A DNA stretch of 61,866 nt, filler included, from Choristocarpus tenellus KU-1152 (lineage: Eukaryota; Protista; Phaeophyceae): NCBI GenBank assembly GCA_964200185.2. It is 7 parts of 7 records of this genome, joined end to end, with 100 filler letters (N's around TTAATTAATTAA, not from the genome) between each part and the next. Parts side by side here need not be neighbours in the genome. Positions count along the whole stretch, not along the records: positions 1 to 15,068 come from CAXNAD020001068.1; 6 more parts are not named here. One strand, written 5' to 3'. The position numbers and the translations under genes are program-made. This document shows positions 1,831 through 12,622 of this stretch, piece after piece. A model generated the notes under the pieces. The model was not told where the DNA came from and searched no databases. It was given only the letters and a program-made list of their open reading frames with translations. Numbering within the stretch: position 1 is the stretch's first letter; the number at the start of each line of letters is the position of its first letter.

Positions 1831-2356
1831 AACCCATGTGTAAAATGAAGAAGAAAAAACAACAGCACAATAACTCCAAAATACTTGAAAACTCAACAGC
1901 CTCAGCAATCAACACGCAATTCAACAATCGACAGCTGTGTCCTCTAAGCCACAAAACAAACATTTAAAGCCAATCGAGATACAAATGGCTTAGTAAAACA
2001 TTTCCTCATCAGGCAGAGACTCTGAAATTGCTGCAACCAGGTACTAACACATATTATTAAGATCATAGAAATTCGATGTTCTCTGGATCACTGTCAGAAA
2101 TAACACAGAGGAAAGTAGAGCATATACTACACAGTCATACAGTAATAAAAAAAGTCTGCAATATGAATGAAATCAACACATCAAAGATGCATGTATCAAG
2201 ACTATCCGTTTGGCAACACGGATCTCAGTGAATAATCTACAGAACCTCCTAAATCAAACCCAATCTATTGAGAGGACTGTACTAGAATGACACTAACCCT
2301 AGCTCTAACCCTCCTATTGTCCTTAACGAAGTTGTGAGTTCCACTTGTCTACGTTA

Positions 2357-2683
2357 TCATTCCCCACCCGCACCATCATCCACCAGTGTCATCACATCCT
2401 TGAAGTCAACATCTGCCTTTCCTTCCCAAAGCCTCTTCTCCAGTTTGTCCTCCTGCTTGTTCATGAACTCCCTTAGATCCTCATATGATTTCCCAACACA
2501 CTCTTTAACCCCAGCTTCCAGGTCCCCCTCACTGCCCATCATTCCTTGAAGAACTTCGTCAGTCACTACCCTATCCGAGATCTCCACAGCAAGTTCCTCC
2601 TTGAACTTGTTAATTAAATCACTCACAGGTATCTCTACCCCACCAGCAGTCTTGCAAGCCGCCACAACAATGACAGCTGTCAC
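2357..2683 (-). CDS. ROCO terminal exon
   Basis: cag acceptor at 2684-2686, phase 0; VTAVIVVAACKTAGG...GKSYEDLREFM...DFKDVMTLVDDGAGGE-stop. Confidence 0.8.
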   Translation of the reverse strand: MTAVIVVAACKTAGGVEIPVSDLINKFKEELAVEISDRVVTDEVLQGMMGSEGDLEAGVKECVGKSYEDLREFMNKQEDKLEKRLWEGKADVDFKDVMTLVDDGAGGE

Positions 2684-5600
2684 CTGGTTGAGAAAAATTG
2701 TAAATTATTCAAGACATGGTGTTGAAGGAATGTCGATTACTGATATCAACATAACCTAGAAAGGCTGGTACTTAGGAAAGTTGCAAGTTCCCAACATACT
2801 TACTTCTACAAAATAATTTTAAGTGACCTCGTGCAAATTTCAACCTAGCATTCGTAGTGAGAAGATTAACCATCGGCTAATAATCGCAAAACCTTTGCCA
2901 CCCAGAAGACACTGGTTTTTTACAGGATTAGAGTACAAGGTGATGCACACCCCCAAAATAAGACATCCTACAACACCATACCTTAGGGTAGATTACTTAC
3001 AAACCATACAGCCTTAACAGTTACACAGGAGGCTACAACAGTATACTAACCCTATGCAGACAATGAAGCGAGGGAAAAGACAACACCTAGGATAGCCAAT
3101 GGGTTGGGGTTGGAATTAGGGTGTCAATTTGGAAAAAGGGAAAAGTATCTACAGCAGAGATCAGGAGTGTTTACCTGCACAACTGGGTACAGCTTCTTTA
3201 CCCATTCTCGAGTGCCATGGAATGGATACCCATTACCATCCAGACCACATGGTATCACCTTACCATCATAAGGGCACAAGAAGTGAAGTCGCTTCTTTGT
3301 CCTGAACACTCCTTTGAAGCATTTACATACCCTCTGAGCCCAATTCTTGACAGAATTACCAGTCACAGCAGACTCTCTCTCATTGCGAATGGATATAAGG
3401 CTAGGAAATGGGTAGTCTTTACCTAGAATCATATTGAGCTTCATCATCATTCCCAGAATGTTCATTGCGAGATTCTCCACTTTCTCTCCCACCTCCTCCA
3501 CTTTCTCTCCCACCTGCTTCAATCCTTTGTCTACATGTTGCTGCAGTGACTCTATGCTCTTCACGAGTGGATGCTCTCCTTCAACAGTTCGTGGATCATC
3601 GGTCCTTCTCCTGAGAAGAAGACCTGGGAACTGATCGTTGAAGAGTTGCTTTATTATCTTCGATAGCTTCAACTCACAATCAGTAACTTCTCTGGACAGT
3701 GGCACACCCATCACATGAAACTCAATGAATGATGGTTTGTCCAAGACAGCCTGAGGGTGCAGGTGCAACAGTACCTCAGGTCCCCCCATTCTAAATGAAG
3801 CTCCATACCTCCAGCACACATGGAGCTGTAAATTATGCTGAATGCACCGAGCCATTAGCAGCCCAAGAAGACCCGCTGGCAAGTAAGATTGTTCCAATAG
3901 ATAAACACTCTCAAGCCGCCAGCGATTGTTCGGTAATTCAAACTTCTTCAGGCTTTCCAGCTTGATAGGTAGGCGTACCATCACCATCAGGTTGAGGTTG
4001 TTGTCCAAGACACTTGTATCCTCACACTGTGTTAGTGGAGCACTTGCAGAAACACTCTCAAAAATAGCCCCAAACTCTGACATAGTGCGCAGAAGTCGTT
4101 TGAAGACAACCTCATCCTTGTCCACATCCAATAAATATAAATACATAATATGTTGTATTAAAGGGTACGTCCTCTTTCGTAACAAATTAAAAGTACCAAA
4201 AAAAATATGGAATCTTCCAAGACATATAAACCCTAACCCTGACCCTAACCCTATACCGAAAAGATATATAGAATCTTCCAAGACATTTTAACTCTAAACC
4301 CAACCCTATATATGTATCTTACGATAAGAGTAGTTTATCCTTATAACAAGTTAGAAATCAAAACAAAATTCACCATATATAGTAACCATAACAGAAACGG
4401 TTGCATACCTTCAGATACTTGGTGACAGCAGCATCTTCTGCACCACCATCCCAATTTCCCTTATTCCAGATATCTTTCCATTTCACAACAGCATCCTCCA
4501 AATGCAAATACGGCAACATCGTTTGACCTTCACCCTTGGCATGTGACACCTCACCCGGCTTGAGTGCTGCCATCAAGGGGTCCAACCCATCACGTAGAGC
4601 AACCATCACAGCAGATGCCCTTGCCCATCCCATTGGGATAACCTTACCAACAGTGGGAAACAAGCGAGTTCCATCTGTGCCAGGTCTAACTCCATGCATC
4701 ACAAGCTCCACAATCTTCTTTCGAACGGCATCCATCCTTTCTCCTCCTGACTGACACGATACAGCCATCACTCCTAAGATGTGAAGATTCGCAGGTGGTT
4801 GAACCTCCACGTTTTCCGCACCCAACTCCCCCTGCCGCTTAGAACAGATTTTTTCCATCTCTTCACGTTTGACTCTCAGGTGCTTACCAATCAAAAGATC
4901 AAGCTTCTTCATCGCATATGCAACCTCATCGTCACCCTTCATACAGTCGATATGCGTCCCAACAACCAAAACAGATGAACCAGGCACCCTGCAGAGCAGC
5001 AGATCAAGCCAGCCGTAGACCAGCTTACCTCCCTCTGACTCTTCATGATAGAACTTGTTGAGGTCAACCACAACAAGGTTTAAGGCGCCCGTAGAAAGAA
5101 AAAATGGACGCATAGAGTCGTACTCCTTGTGTGCGCCAAAGTCCCACATCATCAATTCTAACAGCTCTTCACCATTCGGCTTCCAGGAGTGTACATCCAC
5201 TCCACTAGTGCGATCTTCAAGAGCGGTCAAATAAGGGAGTCCATCCAATATACTCCGGGCAAGGCTGGTCTTGCCTGCACAAACCTCGCCAACAAGAACC
5301 ACCTTCAGCCTGTAGGACTTAGTCGACCCAGAACGTTCAAGAGCCTCGTAATATCGAACAATTGCCTCCAAACCACGCGACACAACCTCTGCTGGAGGAC
5401 TAACCCATTGGTTGCGTAAAGAATCATGGTATTCCAAATGAATGCATGAACTAAGCCGTAGTGCTGCCTCCTTCAAAAAAACTGATACGAATAAAATGAA
5501 ATATAACCGACACGGAAGGAAGAAACATTAGGAGTTAGATAAAGATTGTAAAGCAATGCCACAAAACAAAAAGTAATGAAATGAACTTCCACCACATTCA

Positions 5601-8600
5601 ACATCTTCCCAACTTCACCTACTACATAATATATTACTTAACTGCAGAAATATTATAAGTAGCAAGCATCACTGACAAAACATTGTCAAACTTCGAAATT
5701 ATCACAAATACCAATCAGGAATGAATTGATAAGGCATTGAAAACGAAAAACACAACCACTCTTACAATCAAGAATTCTCAATCACCTTCTATCCTCAGAC
5801 TAACCAACCTATCCACAACAAAGCCATACACAAACGAGAGCAAAAGAGACCCCTAACACAAAATCAAATACCTCCTCAACTATCCTGCCCTGACTAATAC
5901 AACCATAACTAATATGCCTCTACATTATTGTTCACTACAAACATCACCTCCAGGTACACAACAACCCTCATGTGCACTACATACATCACTCTCCTGTCAA
6001 CACATCTAATTGTCACACTAATCAGTATCAAACCAATAATGGTCTTGCTCTAGTACTGATGCGAAATTGGATTCAATCATCTCTATATTGCACCAGTCAA
6101 ACATTCCTAGAACACACACCAAAAATATACATTTTTGACAACACTAGGGTACTTTAACAGGAAACCAAAAAAAGGTACCTTCCAAATTCAACAAATATCC
6201 AACTCCACACTCACCACTGAGTTCATTGTTGTCCAAATCTAGGTGCATGAGAGCAGAGAGATTCCCCAGTGACTCCGGTATGTTTCCTGTGAGAAAAAGA
6301 ATTGATTTACGAAAGCCATTCAGGTTTCACAATAAACAAACAACCATTAGTCAAAAGTGCAGTAACAAAGCATGCAAAAAGAAAAATACAGTAAATCTTA
6401 CAATCAAAAATTCTCAATCACCTTCTATCCTCAGACTAACCAAACATCTTAGACCAACCTATCCAAAACAACGCCATACACAAACGAGAGTAAAAAGAGA
6501 CCCCTAACACAAAACAATATACCACCTCAAATATCCTGCCCTGACTAATACAACCACAACTAATATGCCTACACTCTTGTCCACTACAAACATCACCTCC
6601 AGGTACACAACAACCCTCATGCGCACTACATAAATCACTCTCCTGTCAACACATCTAAATGTCACACTAATCAATATCAAACCGACCATCTTCTTGCTCT
6701 ATTACTGATACGAAATTAGATTTAATCATCTCTATATTACACCAGTCAAACATTCTTAGGGCACACATCAAAAATATACATTTTGACCACACTACGGTAC
6801 TTCAACAGGAAACCAAGAAAAAAGAGATACCTTCAAATTCAACAAATGTCCAACTTCACACTCACCGCTAAATTTATTTCTTCGCAAATCTAGGTACGTG
6901 AGAGCAGAGAGATTCCCCAGTGACTCCGGGATTCTCCCTGTGAGAAAAAGAGTTGATTTACAGAAGCCAATCAGGTCTCATAAACAAACAACCATTAGTC
7001 AAAAGTGGAGTGACAAAGCATGCAAAACAAAAAACAAATCTATTCTTACCATCAAAAATTCTCAATCACCATTAATCCTCAGACTAACAAAACATCTTCA
7101 ACCAACCTATCCACAACAAAGCCATACACAAACGAGAGCAAAAAAAGACCCCTACAACAAATCAAAATACCTCCTCAACTATCCTGCCCTGACTAATACA
7201 ACCACTACTAAAATGCCTACACTCTTGTCTAATACAAACATCACCTCAAGGTACACAACAACCCTCATGCGCACTACATACATCACTCTCCAGTCAAAAT
7301 ATCTAATTGTCACACTAATCAGTATCAAACCAATAATCGTCTTGCTCTAGTACTGATACGAAATTGGATTCAATCATCTCTATATTGCACCAGTCAAACA
7401 TTCCTAGGGCACACATCAAAGAAATACATTTTTGACCACACTAGGGTACTTTACCAGGAAACCAAAAGAAACGAGATATTTTCAAATTCAACAAATATCG
7501 AACTTCACACTCACCGCTAAATTTATTTATTCGCAAATCTAGGTACGTGAGAGAGAAGAGATTGCCCAGTGACTCCGGGATGGTCCCTGTGAGGAAGAGT
7601 TCATTTACAAAAACAATTCAGGTATTACACTACACAAAAGTGGGGTGACAAAGCATGCAAAACGAAAAACACATCTATTCTTACCATCAAAAAATTTCAA
7701 CCACCTTCTATCCTCAGACTAACCAAACATCTTCAACCAACCTATCCACAACAACGCCATACACAAACGAGAGCAAAAAGAGACCCCTACAACAAAACAA
7801 AACACCTCAACTATCCTGCCCTGACTAATACAACCACAACTAATATGCCTACACTCTTGTCCACTACAAACATCACTCTCCTGTCAACATATCTAATTGT
7901 CACACTAATCAATATCAAACCAATAATGGTCTTGCTCTAGTACTGATAACAAATTGGATTCAATCATCTCTCTATTGCACCAGTCCAACATTCTTAGGGC
8001 ACAAATCAAAAATATAAATTTTTGACCTCACTAGGGTACTTCAACAGGAAACAAGAAGAAACGAGATACCTCCAAATTCAACAAATGTCCAACTTCACAC
8101 TCACCACTGAGTTCATTGTTGTCCAAATCTAGGTGCGTGAGAGCAGAGAGATTCCCCAGTGACTGCGGGATGGTCCCTGTGAGGAAAAGAGTTGATTTAC
8201 AAAAGCCATTCAGGTTTCACAATAAACAAACAACCATTAGTCAATAGTAGGGTGACAAAACATGCAAAACGAAAAATACAGTAAATCTTACAATCAAAAA
8301 TTCTCAATCACCTTCTATCCTCAGACTTATCAAACATCTTCTACCAACCTATCCACAACAACGCCATACACAAACAAAAGCAAAAAGAGACCCTTACCAC
8401 AAAACAAAATACCTCCTCAACTATCCTGCCCTGACTAATACAACCACAACTATTATGCCTACACTATTGTCCACTACAAACATCGCATCAAGGTGCACAA
8501 CAACCCTCATGCGCACTACGTAACTCTCCTGTCAACACATCTAATTGTCACACTAATCAATATCAAACCAACCATCATCTTGCTCTAGTACTGATACGAA

Positions 8601-11600
8601 ATAGAATTCAATCATCTCTATATTGCACTAGTCAAAACTTCTTAGGGCACGCATCAAAAATATACATTTTTGACCACACTAGGGTACTTCAACAGGAAAC
8701 CAAAAAAAAGGAGATACCTTCAAATTCAACAAATGTTCAACTTTACACTCAACGCTAAATTTATTGTTGTCCAAATCTAGCCACGTGAGAGCAGAGAGAT
8801 TCCCCAGTGACTCCGGGATTGGTCCTACAAGGAAAAGAGTTGATTTACAAAAGCCAATCAGGTTTCATAATAAACAAACAACCCTTAGTCAAAAGTGGGG
8901 TGACAAAGCCTTCAAAACGAAATACACATCTATTCTCACAATCACGAATTTTCAATCACCTTCTATCCTCAGACTAACCAATCTATCCAATACAAAGCCA
9001 TACACAACAACGCCATACACAAACGAGAGCAAAAAGAGACCCCTAACACAAAACAAAATACCTCCTCAAATATCCTGCCCTGACTAATACAACCACAACT
9101 AATATGCTTTCACTCTTGTCTACTACAAACATCACCTCCAGGTACACAACAACCCTCATTCGCACTATATACATCACTCTCTTGTCAACACATCTAATTG
9201 TCACACTAATCAATATTAAACCAATCATGGTCTTGCTCTATTACTCATACGTAATTGGATTCAATCATCTCTATATTGCACTAGTCCAACATCATTGGGC
9301 ACACATCAAAGTTATACACTTTTGACCACACTAGGGTACTTCAACAGCAAACCAAAAAGAAACGAGATACCTTCAAATTCAACCAATATTCAACTTCATA
9401 CTCACCGTTAAATTTATTTACTCCCGAATATAGTTTTGTAAGGGCAGAGAGATTCCCCAGTGACTCCGGGATGCTCCCTGTGAAGAAAAGAGTTAATTTA
9501 CAAAAGCCAATCAGGTTTCACAATAAACAACCATTAGTCAAAAGTGGAGTGACAAAGCATGCAAAACAAAAAACACATCTATTCTTACAATCCAAAATTC
9601 TCAATCACCTTCTATCCTCAGACTAACCACACATCAACCAACCTATCCACAACAAAGCCATACACAAACGAGAGCAAAAATATACCCCTACCACAAAATC
9701 AAATACCTCCTCAACTATCCTGCCCTGACTAATACAACCACAACTAATATGCCTAAACTCTTGTCTACTACAAACATCACCTCCAGGTACAAAACAACAC
9801 TCATGCGCACTACATACATCACTCTCCTGTCAACACATCTAATTGTCACACTAATTAATATCAAGCCAATCATGGTCTTGCTCTAGTACTGATACGTGAT
9901 TGGATTCAATCATTTCTACATTGCACCAAACATTCTTAGGGCACACATCAAAAATATAATTTTTTGACCACACTGGGGTACTTCAACAGGAATTCAAAAA
10001 CAGGAGATACCTTCAAATTCAACAAATGTCCAACTTCACACTCACCACTCAAAATATTGTATTTAAAATTTAGGTGCATGAGATCAGAGAGATTCCCCAG
10101 TGACTCCGGGATTGGTCCTGTGGTGAAAGGATTTGATTTACGAATGCTATTCAAGTTTCATAATACACAAACAACCATTAGTCAAAAGTGGGGTGACAAA
10201 GCATGCAAAACGAAAAACAAATCTATTCTTACAATCATAAATTCTCTATCACCTTCTATCCTCAGATTAACCAAACATCTTCAACCAACCTATCCACAAC
10301 AACGCTATACACAAACGAGAGCAAATGGAGAGACCTACCACAAAACATGATACCTTCTTAACTATCCTGCCCTCACTAATACAACCACAACTAATATGCC
10401 TACACTTCTGAACATTCATTAGCAACAAAAAAATATTAATGAAAACTAAAAAAAATCACAAAATTAGTTACTGGGACATGATTTACTTACCGCATAGTAC
10501 ATATGAAAAAGTGACACTACTCACAATATATATTCCAGAAACACCAACAACGGGAGTGTATTACCTCAAATAAAAAGTTTTTTACACAAATTATAACAAA
10601 AAATAATCGTAAAATGACTCCAATATGCATTTTATTATTCACAAACAAGAATTCATGGGTGTTCTATTTGTTGTAATGTTTAGCTTTCACTACACACTAA
10701 AAAACAGTTAATCATACCAAGAGCACCTTTGATCACATATGTTACAAAAATATGTTGACTAGAAAATTTAGTAATCTCTCTACAGAAAGCTAAAATGATA
10801 CTATTTAACCTAACTTTTCTAAACTGTATCAATCGATATTAGTGCAAATCTGTATGTACCAACAACTCGACCACTTCAGAAGCACAACCACACTTGTCTT
10901 GTTCCTCTATTGGTTTTGCAATCTCTACCAGCCTTGTTATATTTAGCAACACCCTCCATGATGCCATTTCTCAGCATGTGGTGTCAGTGACTTAACAAAG
11001 AATACAGAAACTATAGAACAATTTATGTTGGGAGACAGAAGTTCAGAAAAATATCATATTTTTCTACTGGGCACTACAGTGTGGGGTTTAAACGTACCAA
11101 TGCTGGTCTGATTCTCAATTGCCAGCCATAAACATTCGGTTTGCAATCACATTAGGGTTTATAATAAAGAAAAAATAATCAAATCAATTCATAGAGATTT
11201 CAAGAAACTTGAAATATGACAAATCAAAACGACAAGCCATTGATAACTGACAATCAATGCCTTCCAACAGGTGCTCTAAAAGATTTAATCTTAAGTACCA
11301 ATCCCCCGGAAATGATGGTATGTTTTTGCTCATTGACTGATTTAACAAAAAAATAATTGATATTTTGCCTTCAGCAATATATTATGTACACAGAACATTT
11401 TAAAGTAGAAAAGGTTGTGTTGCGGGAGATTAGCAGAATTTATCTCAGGAATTTACAATTTACACAGAAATATGTTTAATCGGATTTTGAATACATGTGC
11501 GAACATATTTTTCTTCTAAACATCACATAAAAACAAACAAGATTAAGATTGGAACACCAATCTACCGGTACTGCATGTTCTGTCCGAATCATTCTGGTCA

Positions 11601-12622
11601 CAAATACTTTAGTGCAAGAGGTTACTTGCGATCACCACTTCATAATAGGGTAATCTAAAGCATAAACCAAAGCCTGACGGACGCTGTTCAGAGGTAGATG
11701 TCAAAGCTGAGACACACCCAACCAATCACAAAGACAAAATGGTCCAGTTCTCGCACAGCTTCACTCTTGTACAGTTTTGTATACCCCACCTCAAAAGACC
11801 TTTCGATATAGGTTGTGTTCCATCTCCCTTCACGAGAATCTCCAAAATCAAACCTTGGAAGACGAGCCCTTGCGTCATTGTAAAAACCAATTTCTTGTCC
11901 CTTCCAAAAGGAGTCGTGGTGTCATATTCCCCTACAAATGTTAACGCACGCCTCATCGTTGACCTTCTAAAACGGCAGAAGTCAAATATGACCTCATGTA
12001 CACATACCACATTCCTTCCTAGGACCACTAATGCGGACAAAACCTCGACCAATACTATTTGATTTTAACCTCACAGCCACTGTCCCATGTGTCAACACAC
12101 ATGCACGAATGCTCAGTGTAAACTCCTTCATCATTCACATCTGTAAAAGACCTCCATGAGCGAGTCAACACTATTGCGCCCTTCGATATACACATCACAA
12201 ATTTGAAGCCAACCATACAAGAAGCCACCAGGAAATGGACGTGCACCACACAAAATTGGAATGTAAAACACCACAGTCAAATCTTACCCTTGAGGTTGTT
12301 CTTGGGGAGGTTGATCTTCACCACGTACCCTTCATCATCGACTTCAACCCCGTACCACGTTGGCAGATCATCAGCATTGGAGTTCCACCCGGTATTATTC
12401 TTCCACAGATGTCCATTCGTGGAGACATAGAATTCAAGAAGAATCTCCCGTTGCGCGACTGTAGTCGAGAATCGAAGGGCAACAAGCGACAAATGCGATA
12501 CCAAATTTATTAGTTGCTGTTCTCTGTTTAGCATTTTCATTCTCAACCTATCACCGGAAACACCACGAAAACAACTCACCTGCTCTCCGGGATGATTCCA
12601 ACCTGCTAGTCGCCATCGCCAT
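2357..12622 (-). CDS. LRR-ROC-COR (ROCO) GTPase gene, brown-algal candidate immune-receptor type; ~12 exons; possibly partly degenerate
   Basis: Hand-spliced model: exon 12580-12622 (MAMATSRLESSRRA), LRR N-cap exon 12288-12458, seven 72-nt LRR exons in 6215-10117, ROC exon 4409-5481, COR exon ~3175-4130 (acceptor unclear), last exon 2357-2683 ending TGA. Phases agree at every junction that could be resolved. Confidence 0.9.
3175..4130 (-). CDS. ROCO exon: COR domain and downstream helical/C-terminal region (5' boundary uncertain)
   Basis: Long ORF (VFKRLLRTMSEFGAIF...LPAGLLGLLMARC...CWRYGASF...FPGL...LHFLCPYD...CGLDGNGY); gtaaac donor after 3175; no clean acceptor seen. Confidence 0.8.
4409..5481 (-). 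CDS. ROCO exon: LRR C-cap, ROC GTPase domain and start of COR
   Basis: NQWVSPPAEVVSRGLEAI cap; P-loop LKVVLVGEVCAGKTSL; RTSGVDV; WDFGAHKEY; VVGTHID (G4); cag acceptor at 5482-5484, gtatg donor after 4409. Confidence 0.93.
6215..6286 (-). CDS. LRR exon, last before ROC: GNIPESLGNLSALMHLDLDNNELS
   Basis: 72 nt, cag/gtgag, phase 1-1; joins in frame to the ROC exon acceptor at 5482-5484. Confidence 0.9.
6866..6937 (-). CDS. LRR exon: GRIPESLGNLSALTYLDLRRNKFSG
   Basis: 72 nt, cag/gtgag, phase 1-1. Confidence 0.9.
7515..7586 (-). CDS. LRR exon: GTIPESLGNLFSLTYLDLRINKFSG
   Basis: 72 nt, cag/gtgag, phase 1-1. Confidence 0.9.
8105..8176 (-). CDS. LRR exon: GTIPQSLGNLSALTHLDLDNNELSG
   Basis: 72 nt, cag/gtgag, phase 1-1. 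Confidence 0.9.
8753..8824 (-). pseudogene. LRR exon with mutated donor (TT instead of GT): GPIPESLGNLSALTWLDLDNNKFS
   Basis: 72-nt open LRR with a tag acceptor. The plus strand reads ctcaac (8748-8753) where the six sister exons read ctcacc, so the donor is ttgag. Confidence 0.75.
9406..9477 (-). CDS. LRR exon: GSIPESLGNLSALTKLYSGVNKFNG
   Basis: 72 nt, cag/gtgag; Ser at a consensus Leu position of LxLxxN. Confidence 0.85.
10046..10117 (-). CDS. LRR exon, first in transcript: GPIPESLGNLSDLMHLNFKYNILSG
   Basis: 72 nt, cag acceptor, gtgag donor, phase 1-1, 24-aa plant-specific-type LRR. Confidence 0.9.
12288..12458 (-). CDS. ROCO exon 2: LRR N-terminal cap plus first partial LRR
   Basis: cag|..|gtaag, 171 nt, phase 1-1; AQREILLEFYVSTNGHLWKNNTGWNSNADDLPTWYGVEVDDEGYVVKINLPKNNLKG matches the W..W...W.GV.....V..L.L..NNL.G cap pattern. 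Confidence 0.9.

Follow-up and report, generated by a model that had tools for sequence, protein, structure and literature searches.

Our analysis of a 61,866-nucleotide (nt) window from the genome of Choristocarpus tenellus KU-1152 reveals an array of small exons, each encoding a single leucine-rich repeat (LRR). The array lies on contig CAXNAD020001068.1 (hereafter C1068), which forms the first part of the window and was analyzed as a whole; the assembly comprises 164 Mb in 27,310 contigs. Judged by its sequence, the gene that contains the array is a minus-strand LRR-Roc(-COR) GTPase of the ROCO family, of the brown-algal type. We consider it highly probable that the locus is a germline exon array, constitutively spliced, that has been shaped by unequal crossing-over or gene conversion along with selection on exposed sites. 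Five aspects of the locus were observed directly: its anatomy, the order of splicing, the excess divergence of exposed sites, the mosaicism of the units, and the differences in copy number among paralogues. According to this explanation, the LRR domain would be assembled by constitutive splicing of exon 1 (N-cap plus LRR1), a series of 72-nt phase 1-1 exons, and the Roc exon. In the germline, the 648-bp unit would be duplicated, deleted, and partly converted by way of its homologous introns, so that growth and change of the array would be ongoing, with unequal crossing-over and gene conversion between introns as the probable engine. Selection would drive or preserve amino acid differences at the solvent-exposed x positions of LxxLxLxxNxL. 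Finally, one cassette (c3) would have lost its splice donor and now be skipped, leaving six cassette LRRs in the mRNA.

The array occupies positions 5727-10462 on the minus strand and consists of tandem units of ~648 bp, each an exon with its intron, with 7-8 copies per segment. Successive units are spaced by 640, 653, 648, 590, 649, and 651 bp, and a MAFFT alignment of the units was clean. Between exon 1, which ends at 12288, and the Roc exon, which starts at 5481, there are seven 72-nt single-LRR cassettes on the minus strand (c1 to c7; Table 1). All seven follow the consensus G-x-IPESLGNLS-x-L-xx-L-x-L-xx-N-x-L-S of a plant-type 24-residue LRR. The motif LxxLxLxxNxLsGxIPxxLGxL was found in 7/7 cassettes, with serine in place of the third leucine of LxxLxL in c2. 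At its 5' end, each cassette carries the two bases that finish a glycine codon, and at its 3' end the G that opens the next one. The resulting 1-1 phase fits both the donor of exon 1 at 12288 (...CTC AAG G/gtaaga, phase 1; the slash marks the border) and the acceptor of the Roc exon at 5481. Six cassettes are intact, with canonical AG/GT borders and strong polypyrimidine tracts. In c3, the donor is TT and not GT (...AGCG/ttgagt versus ...G/gtgagt in the other six). This cassette is a splice-inactivated pseudo-exon, and the working array comprises six exons and one pseudo-exon. Beyond c7, the homology of a terminal partial unit ends short of the position expected for an eighth exon.

Splice joints provide a second line of evidence. 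Contigs of three public runs from one 2024 study were aligned to positions 4900-10700, and those of run X1 contain GT..AG joints at exactly the predicted exon borders. Specifically, the Roc exon is joined to c7 (5481>6215), c7 to c6 (6286>6866), c6 to c5 (6937>7515), c5 to c4 (7586>8105), and c2 to c1 (9477>10046). The remaining joint leads from c4 straight to c2 (8176>9406), skipping 1229 nt that include c3. Among the run contigs aligned to this stretch, no joint was listed on either side of c3, and no alternative splice joint was listed for the gene. Because the genome assembly does not contain the c2-c4 junction sequence, the joined form represents spliced RNA and not a retrocopy. The mRNA carries six cassette LRRs in genomic order (c1-c2-c4-c5-c6-c7-Roc), and since the spliced chain of X1 follows the order of the contig, it independently confirms how the cassettes were assembled. 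The same run yielded loose ends and a record that goes back along the array (9478>6898). We considered these as alternative isoforms and rejected them, as they decode as transcripts of a paralogous locus (C6580) that cross-map on the shared scaffold. A search for inverted repeats that could support docking/selector pairing of the Dscam kind returned a single AT-rich 19-mer of chance quality.

These results bear on several claims of an earlier note on this DNA. The note had described tandem units of ~650 bp in which the intron was duplicated with the exon, and it had listed the variable residues of each cassette; the units are there, and the list is exact. It had also counted seven 72-nt phase 1-1 exons. 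The number of cassettes and their phase hold, but c3, with its TT donor, is skipped and is not an exon. The expectation that symmetric exons and homologous introns would permit in-frame loss or skipping is borne out by that same cassette, whose omission preserves the reading frame. The suggestion that splicing generates a repertoire fared differently, as the sole spliced chain seen keeps the genomic order with every intact cassette, and docking/selector complementarity was not found.

The array supplies its own control for the divergence of its exons. Because the intron was duplicated together with the exon, it serves as a neutral yardstick. Mean pairwise divergence within the array was 0.113 for introns and 0.127 for exon nucleotides 1-36, as compared to 0.286 for exon nucleotides 37-72. 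Further measures of variation were taken from a set of 23 cassettes, made up of the seven in this array and 16 intact cassettes of the same subfamily from elsewhere in the genome. In this set, entropy peaked at codons 2, 14, 15, 17, 19, 20, and 22. The six codons with the most variation, out of 24, included every one of the five beta-strand x positions defined a priori (14, 15, 17, 19, and 20); by our own calculation, the probability of this happening by chance is 6/42504. Nucleotide diversity was 0.435 at the seven exposed codons and 0.468 at the core four, versus 0.125 in introns and 0.053 in the scaffold. When random triplet sets were resampled from introns, 0/10,000 reached the diversity of the exposed codons (maximum of 0.32), which diverge ~3.5 times faster than the introns that were duplicated with them. 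Nei-Gojobori proportions of nonsynonymous (pN) and synonymous (pS) differences were 0.50 and 0.29, respectively, for the core four codons, and 0.07 and 0.22 for the scaffold (pN/pS of 0.32). The variable sites are placed on the concave face by reference to the LRR motif and to the work of Teng et al. 2024 (PMC11378527). Selection at these sites may reflect recognition of ligands or pathogens.

The conserved half of the cassette tells a simpler story. The 27-nt IPESLGNLS scaffold, with its diversity of 0.053, falls among the lowest 5% of intron windows. At its third positions, diversity was 0.095 versus 0.125 in introns, which is not a significant reduction (P=0.38 within the array, 0.095 over 23 cassettes). 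The near-invariance of the scaffold's synonymous sites thus reflects the youth of the duplications and not an extra constraint at the nucleotide level. Comparisons of individual cassettes show how unevenly the variable half has changed. For example, c1 and its positional homologue in the paralogous array on contig C3396 (C3396_1) differ at 15/36 nt of the variable half (42%), and their flanks differ by only 8.9%. The opposite pattern occurs within the array, where c4 and c7, and likewise c5 and c6, differ at 1/36 nt of the variable half, with flanks that are ~10-12% different. This near-identity leaves about four distinct expressed types of binding face and not seven, and it suggests either short tracts of conversion or a recent duplication of part of the unit.

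Evidence for change in the number of cassettes comes from other loci in the same genome, where units that are 83-90% identical build further arrays. A complete gene on C3396 has five cassettes, C6580 has four, and C945 has two plus an extra one with an AT donor. The array on C12444 has at least three cassettes and runs to the contig end, and there is at least one on C20879. The loci on C3396, C6580, C945, and C11170 are complete. Exon 1 of C1068 is 95-96% identical to that of the C3396 and C945 paralogues (96% for C3396). Contig C11170 has no cassettes at all. It is colinear with positions 4307-5926 and 10187-12072 of C1068, and the two alignments overlap on a shared unit segment of 220 nt. 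From its sequence, C11170 looks exactly like what would be expected if the partial units on either side of the array had recombined with each other. Within C11170, at positions 2020-5320, the Roc open reading frame (ORF) is intact but there is no LRR cassette, and the 220-nt segment links intron 1 directly to the last LRR intron; splicing of exon 1 to Roc, if it happens, would keep the frame. On C945, a copy of exon 1 and intron 1 that is 92-95% identical to that of C1068 lies in inverted orientation inside the LRR array (9441-11459), between the AT-donor cassette (11828-11899) and two intact cassettes. The C945 Roc exon contains an in-frame TAG; this locus could be a pseudogene that was rearranged, or it could have been misassembled.

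More broadly, the Roc exon had 22 matches on ~12 contigs, many with in-frame stops. The locus appears to be a member of a young birth-and-death family whose arrays range from 0 to 7 cassettes and which includes several pseudogenes. Relationships among the units are mosaic. In a four-gamete test of the seven units, 53% of informative site pairs failed, and incompatibility grew with distance (P=0.0008). Trees built from upstream flanks conflict with those from downstream flanks, and most of their branching is star-like, with first-position units grouping by position and internal units tending to group by locus. The probable source of this pattern is exchange among the units by unequal crossing-over and gene conversion. 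These observations support a germline birth-and-death reading, and recombination is the mechanism that we infer for it. They also agree with the earlier note's proposal that cassettes can be added and dropped by recombination, at least in the germline, given paralogues with 0, 2+1, 4, 5, and 7 cassettes and the recombinant-like structure of C11170. The note's view that variation is concentrated in the xxLxLxxNx residues is upheld by the entropy peaks and the resampling, and the comparison of intron divergence with per-site change that it had called for returned an excess of amino acid change at exposed positions. Its remark that the scaffold is invariant even at synonymous sites is accurate as a description but carries no additional signal.

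The assignment to the ROCO GTPases, which the earlier note had also made, is based on both the Roc exon and the region that follows it. The Roc domain matched Pfam PF08477 (E=1.7e-13; 51.3 bits against a cut-off of 27), and the best PDB matches of the exon were the Roc domain of LRRK2 and the bacterial and archaeal Roco structures 4wnr, 3dpu, and 6hlu (2e-14 to 1e-7). The LRRs lie N-terminal of Roc within one transcript, since a series of GT..AG joints leads from c1 by way of c7 into the Roc exon. The 5' end of that exon is fixed by the RNA joint at 5481, and its 3' end probably lies at a donor at ~4408. Downstream, ORFs of the post-Roc region had no match in Pfam at default thresholds, and a PDB sequence search with the post-Roc ORF had none either. 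Atlas leads for the post-Roc exon were COR-A/COR-B, with scores of 0.82-0.90. An exhaustive HMMER search with the ORF recovered LRR-Roc proteins whose match lies at the post-Roc position; among them, one carries COR-A and another COR-B at 6.8e-5. Named homologues come from Ectocarpus sp. 6, Cladosiphon okamuranus, and Hapterophycus canaliculatus (24-36% identity). The post-Roc exons are probably COR. A search for contigs encoding the post-Roc protein found none on record.

Much of this architecture has been described before in brown algae, as the earlier note had acknowledged for Ectocarpus. Zambounis et al. 2012 (PMC3341825) reported Ectocarpus ROCO genes with 72-nt single-LRR "type I LRR exons" (GxxPxxLxxxxxLxxLxLxxNxLx), inactivated exons, and recent duplicate loci that were nearly identical elsewhere and had recombined only within the LRR domain. 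That study also documented high rates of gene birth and death and diversifying selection with hypervariable concave-face sites, and it advanced a hypothesis of somatic recombination. The Choristocarpus locus shares the LRR-Roc layout, probably with COR, the one-LRR-per-exon organization with symmetric 72-nt exons, the inactivated exons, and the recombination among paralogues. It differs in that its array lacks reverse-strand intronic cassettes, its intron offers a neutral reference from within the locus, and one of its paralogues has no cassettes. In four brown algae including Saccharina japonica and Undaria, Teng et al. 2024 (PMC11378527) described tandem 72-bp LRR exons with positive selection at sites 14, 16, 18, and 19 (23-residue numbering). 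These correspond to codons 15, 17, 19, and 20 in our numbering, which are among the most variable. The "phase 2" of that study is a difference in convention, as an intron after the first base of the glycine codon is phase 1 in standard usage. The same authors documented alternative splicing of LRR exons, with multiple variants for some genes (PMC11378527), whereas only one chain was seen here. With its symmetric 72-nt tandem exons, its hypervariable sites, and its variable paralogues, inactivated exons, and pseudogenes, the locus has the structural features of the exon-shuffled family of brown algae.

Several other explanations deserve consideration. One gene could give rise to many LRR domains through combinatorial splicing of its cassettes, the model favored for Ectocarpus ROCO genes by Teng et al. 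2024 (PMC11378527). Every cassette is phase 1-1, and any skip would stay in frame; the skipping of c3 shows that splicing can reach across 1229 nt to the cassette beyond; and up to nine isoforms are annotated for some Ectocarpus ROCO genes (PMC11378527). Yet, apart from the splice-dead c3, the listed joints all connect neighbor to neighbor, and the six intact cassettes have canonical borders and strong polypyrimidine tracts. Dscam1 of arthropods is a useful comparison, as this recognition protein is also encoded by tandem arrays of duplicated exons that are compatible in frame. In Dscam, docking/selector pairing of the RNA ensures that the use of one cassette excludes the others. Here, in contrast, six cassettes are joined in series, and the complementarity on which the Dscam arrangement depends was not found, with the proviso that contigs are blind to minor isoforms. 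On balance, we regard combinatorial splicing as unlikely. Diversity could instead arise among the cells of one thallus through programmed or frequent somatic recombination, resembling the VLRs of lamprey and hagfish. Both systems have single-LRR cassettes, variable concave-face residues, and an invariant scaffold. A germline VLR gene lacks part of its sequence until somatic copy-choice supplies it from flanking cassettes. In Choristocarpus, the germline gene is complete and expressed colinearly, which is not assembly of the VLR kind. Long homologous introns (~576 nt, 87-91% identical) and the recombination between units seen over evolutionary time are compatible with the somatic hypothesis, which was put forward by Zambounis et al. 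2012 (PMC3341825). A single contig of run X2 contributes a joint between intron positions 3055 nt apart (7114>10170), the sole DNA-like rearranged joint that we saw. We rejected it as a rearrangement: its depth is 4, its short side has 24 letters, it connects non-homologous unit positions, and a paralogue-like loose end lies beside it at 10171. Its most likely source is a paralogue or a contig that is chimeric. No credible rearranged DNA joint was seen in the run contigs over 4900-10700, which are blind to rare events, and Teng et al. 2024 state that neither somatic ROCO recombinants nor a dedicated recombinase had been reported (PMC11378527). We regard the somatic hypothesis as highly improbable. 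The zero-cassette paralogue and the splice-dead c3 make skipping and recombination both mechanically possible, and an individual could in principle use its near-identical introns and symmetric exons to build a receptor repertoire, either by regulated skipping of cassettes, for example on pathogen challenge, or by frequent unequal recombination at mitosis with clonal propagation in a modular alga. We consider this very unlikely. No positive sign of diversification within individuals came from the locus.

Two further explanations question the array or its variation. In a fragmented short-read assembly, paralogous units could have been wrongly chained or collapsed, and the number of contigs, the occurrence of the unit on many of them at similar identity, and the lack of any public-run contig that spans the array would be in keeping with such an artefact. 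The chance of this is close to negligible, however. Pair by pair, independent spliced contigs connect the cassettes, from c1 through to the Roc exon, exactly in the order of the assembly. With differences of 9-16%, the units have sufficient unique sequence to be assembled, and where pieces spanning intron and exon are unique, run contigs agree with them at every position. An argument can also be made that the x positions have simply drifted on a tolerant surface under relaxed constraint, with no diversifying selection. When the exposed codons are set against exon synonymous sites, pN/pS is only 1.0-1.7, from few sites. But drift cannot outpace the neutral rate, and exposed diversity is 3.5 times that of introns; the positional pair c1 and C3396_1 shows the same disparity; and the corresponding four sites are positively selected in other brown algae (PMC11378527). 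Relaxed constraint alone is distinctly unlikely. Measured against exon synonymous sites, the excess at exposed codons is modest (pN/pS of 1.3-1.7, from very few sites), and this and other points weigh against a constitutively spliced germline array of the brown-algal type under selection. The introns, perhaps homogenized by conversion or weakly constrained, might understate the neutral rate. The library type of run X1 is not on record and unspliced pieces are present, so that RNA is recognized only by its GT..AG joints. The read data are de Bruijn contigs in which rare variants, minor isoforms, and rare rearranged cells are not visible, and the junction of exon 1 with c1 lies outside the stretch covered. 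The post-Roc ORF matched Pfam COR-B at E of 0.012 and 15.9 bits, under the cut-off of 27, and the homologues behind the brown-algal assignment are only 24-36% identical in this region. Nevertheless, a germline exon array that is constitutively spliced remains our strongly favored explanation.

Table 1. Features of the LRR-Roc(-COR) gene on C1068, in transcript order
Feature	Position	Strand	Description
Exon 1, coding part	12288..12540	-	LRR N-cap-like segment and LRR1; frame and donor read directly from the ORF; putative start codon at 12540
Intron 1, 2170 nt	10118..12287	-	Final ~290-345 nt (10118 to ~10406-10462) are an exonless partial unit
Cassette c1	10046..10117	-	72 nt, AG/GT; encodes (G)PIPESLGNLSDLMHLNFKYNILS; joined to c2 in spliced contigs
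Cassette c2	9406..9477	-	72 nt, AG/GT; encodes SIPESLGNLSALTKLYSGVNKFN; spliced to c1 and directly to c4
Cassette c3	8753..8824	-	Pseudo-exon with intact reading frame, PIPESLGNLSALTWLDLDNNKFS; donor TT; skipped in RNA
Cassette c4	8105..8176	-	Encodes TIPQSLGNLSALTHLDLDNNELS; splice joints seen
Cassette c5	7515..7586	-	Encodes TIPESLGNLFSLTYLDLRINKFS; splice joints seen
Cassette c6	6866..6937	-	Encodes RIPESLGNLSALTYLDLRRNKFS; splice joints seen
Cassette c7	6215..6286	-	Encodes NIPESLGNLSALMHLDLDNNELS; joined to the Roc exon (5481>6215)
Terminal partial unit, 488 nt	5727..6214	-	Intron sequence of the inter-cassette type; opens the 733-nt last LRR intron (5482-6214)
Roc exon	4409..5481	-	Last degenerate LRR, Roc GTPase domain (P-loop GEVCAGKTS), and start of the post-Roc region
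Post-Roc exon, probably COR	3173..4170	-	Probable borders, from the ORF at 3124-4281
Terminal coding exon, probable	2357..2683	-	Likely exon from its ORF and sequence; TGA stop at 2357; 88% identical to C945

To our knowledge, brown algae do not have the classical plant repertoires of NLRs and RLKs. Their leading candidates for immune receptors are the LRR-ROCO genes. Exon shuffling, selected sites, alternative splicing, and the somatic hypothesis have all been published for these genes (PMC3341825, PMC11378527). What our study adds is the use of the intron as a neutral yardstick, the RNA-verified in-frame skip of a dead cassette, and a paralogue with no cassettes; it introduces no new principle. 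The locus is a clean, internally controlled case that strengthens the published model of germline exon shuffling. In addition, an exact amplicon for addressing the somatic and splicing hypotheses is delimited by exon 1 (12288) and the Roc exon (5481).

Other observations concern the introns and flanks of the gene. A 30-nt intron block at -150 to -121 upstream of each cassette (7058-7087 for c6) has a diversity of 0.056 across 23 units, the lowest of the 30-nt windows and close to the 0.059 of the coding scaffold. Given ~0.08-0.15 for typical well-aligned intron windows, we did not count it as a clear outlier; it could be a splicing element. An Rfam scan of the whole contig returned no match. 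At its very end (1-130), the contig has long homopolymer runs of poly-C and poly-A on the plus strand (G/T on the minus strand), which are probably an assembly-end artefact. Between 300 and 4310, in introns of the gene and in its 3' flank, there are many short telomere-type blocks (TTAGGG/CCCTAA, 2-6 units) in both orientations, for example at 375-413, 540-565, 846-879, ~1040-1075, 1630-1660, 1820-1845, and 4194-4308. The intron that follows the Roc exon includes a 61-nt tandem duplication containing repeats of this type. Finally, a perfect 21-nt tandem duplication at 3475-3515 doubles the heptapeptide VGEKVEE in the post-Roc ORF.

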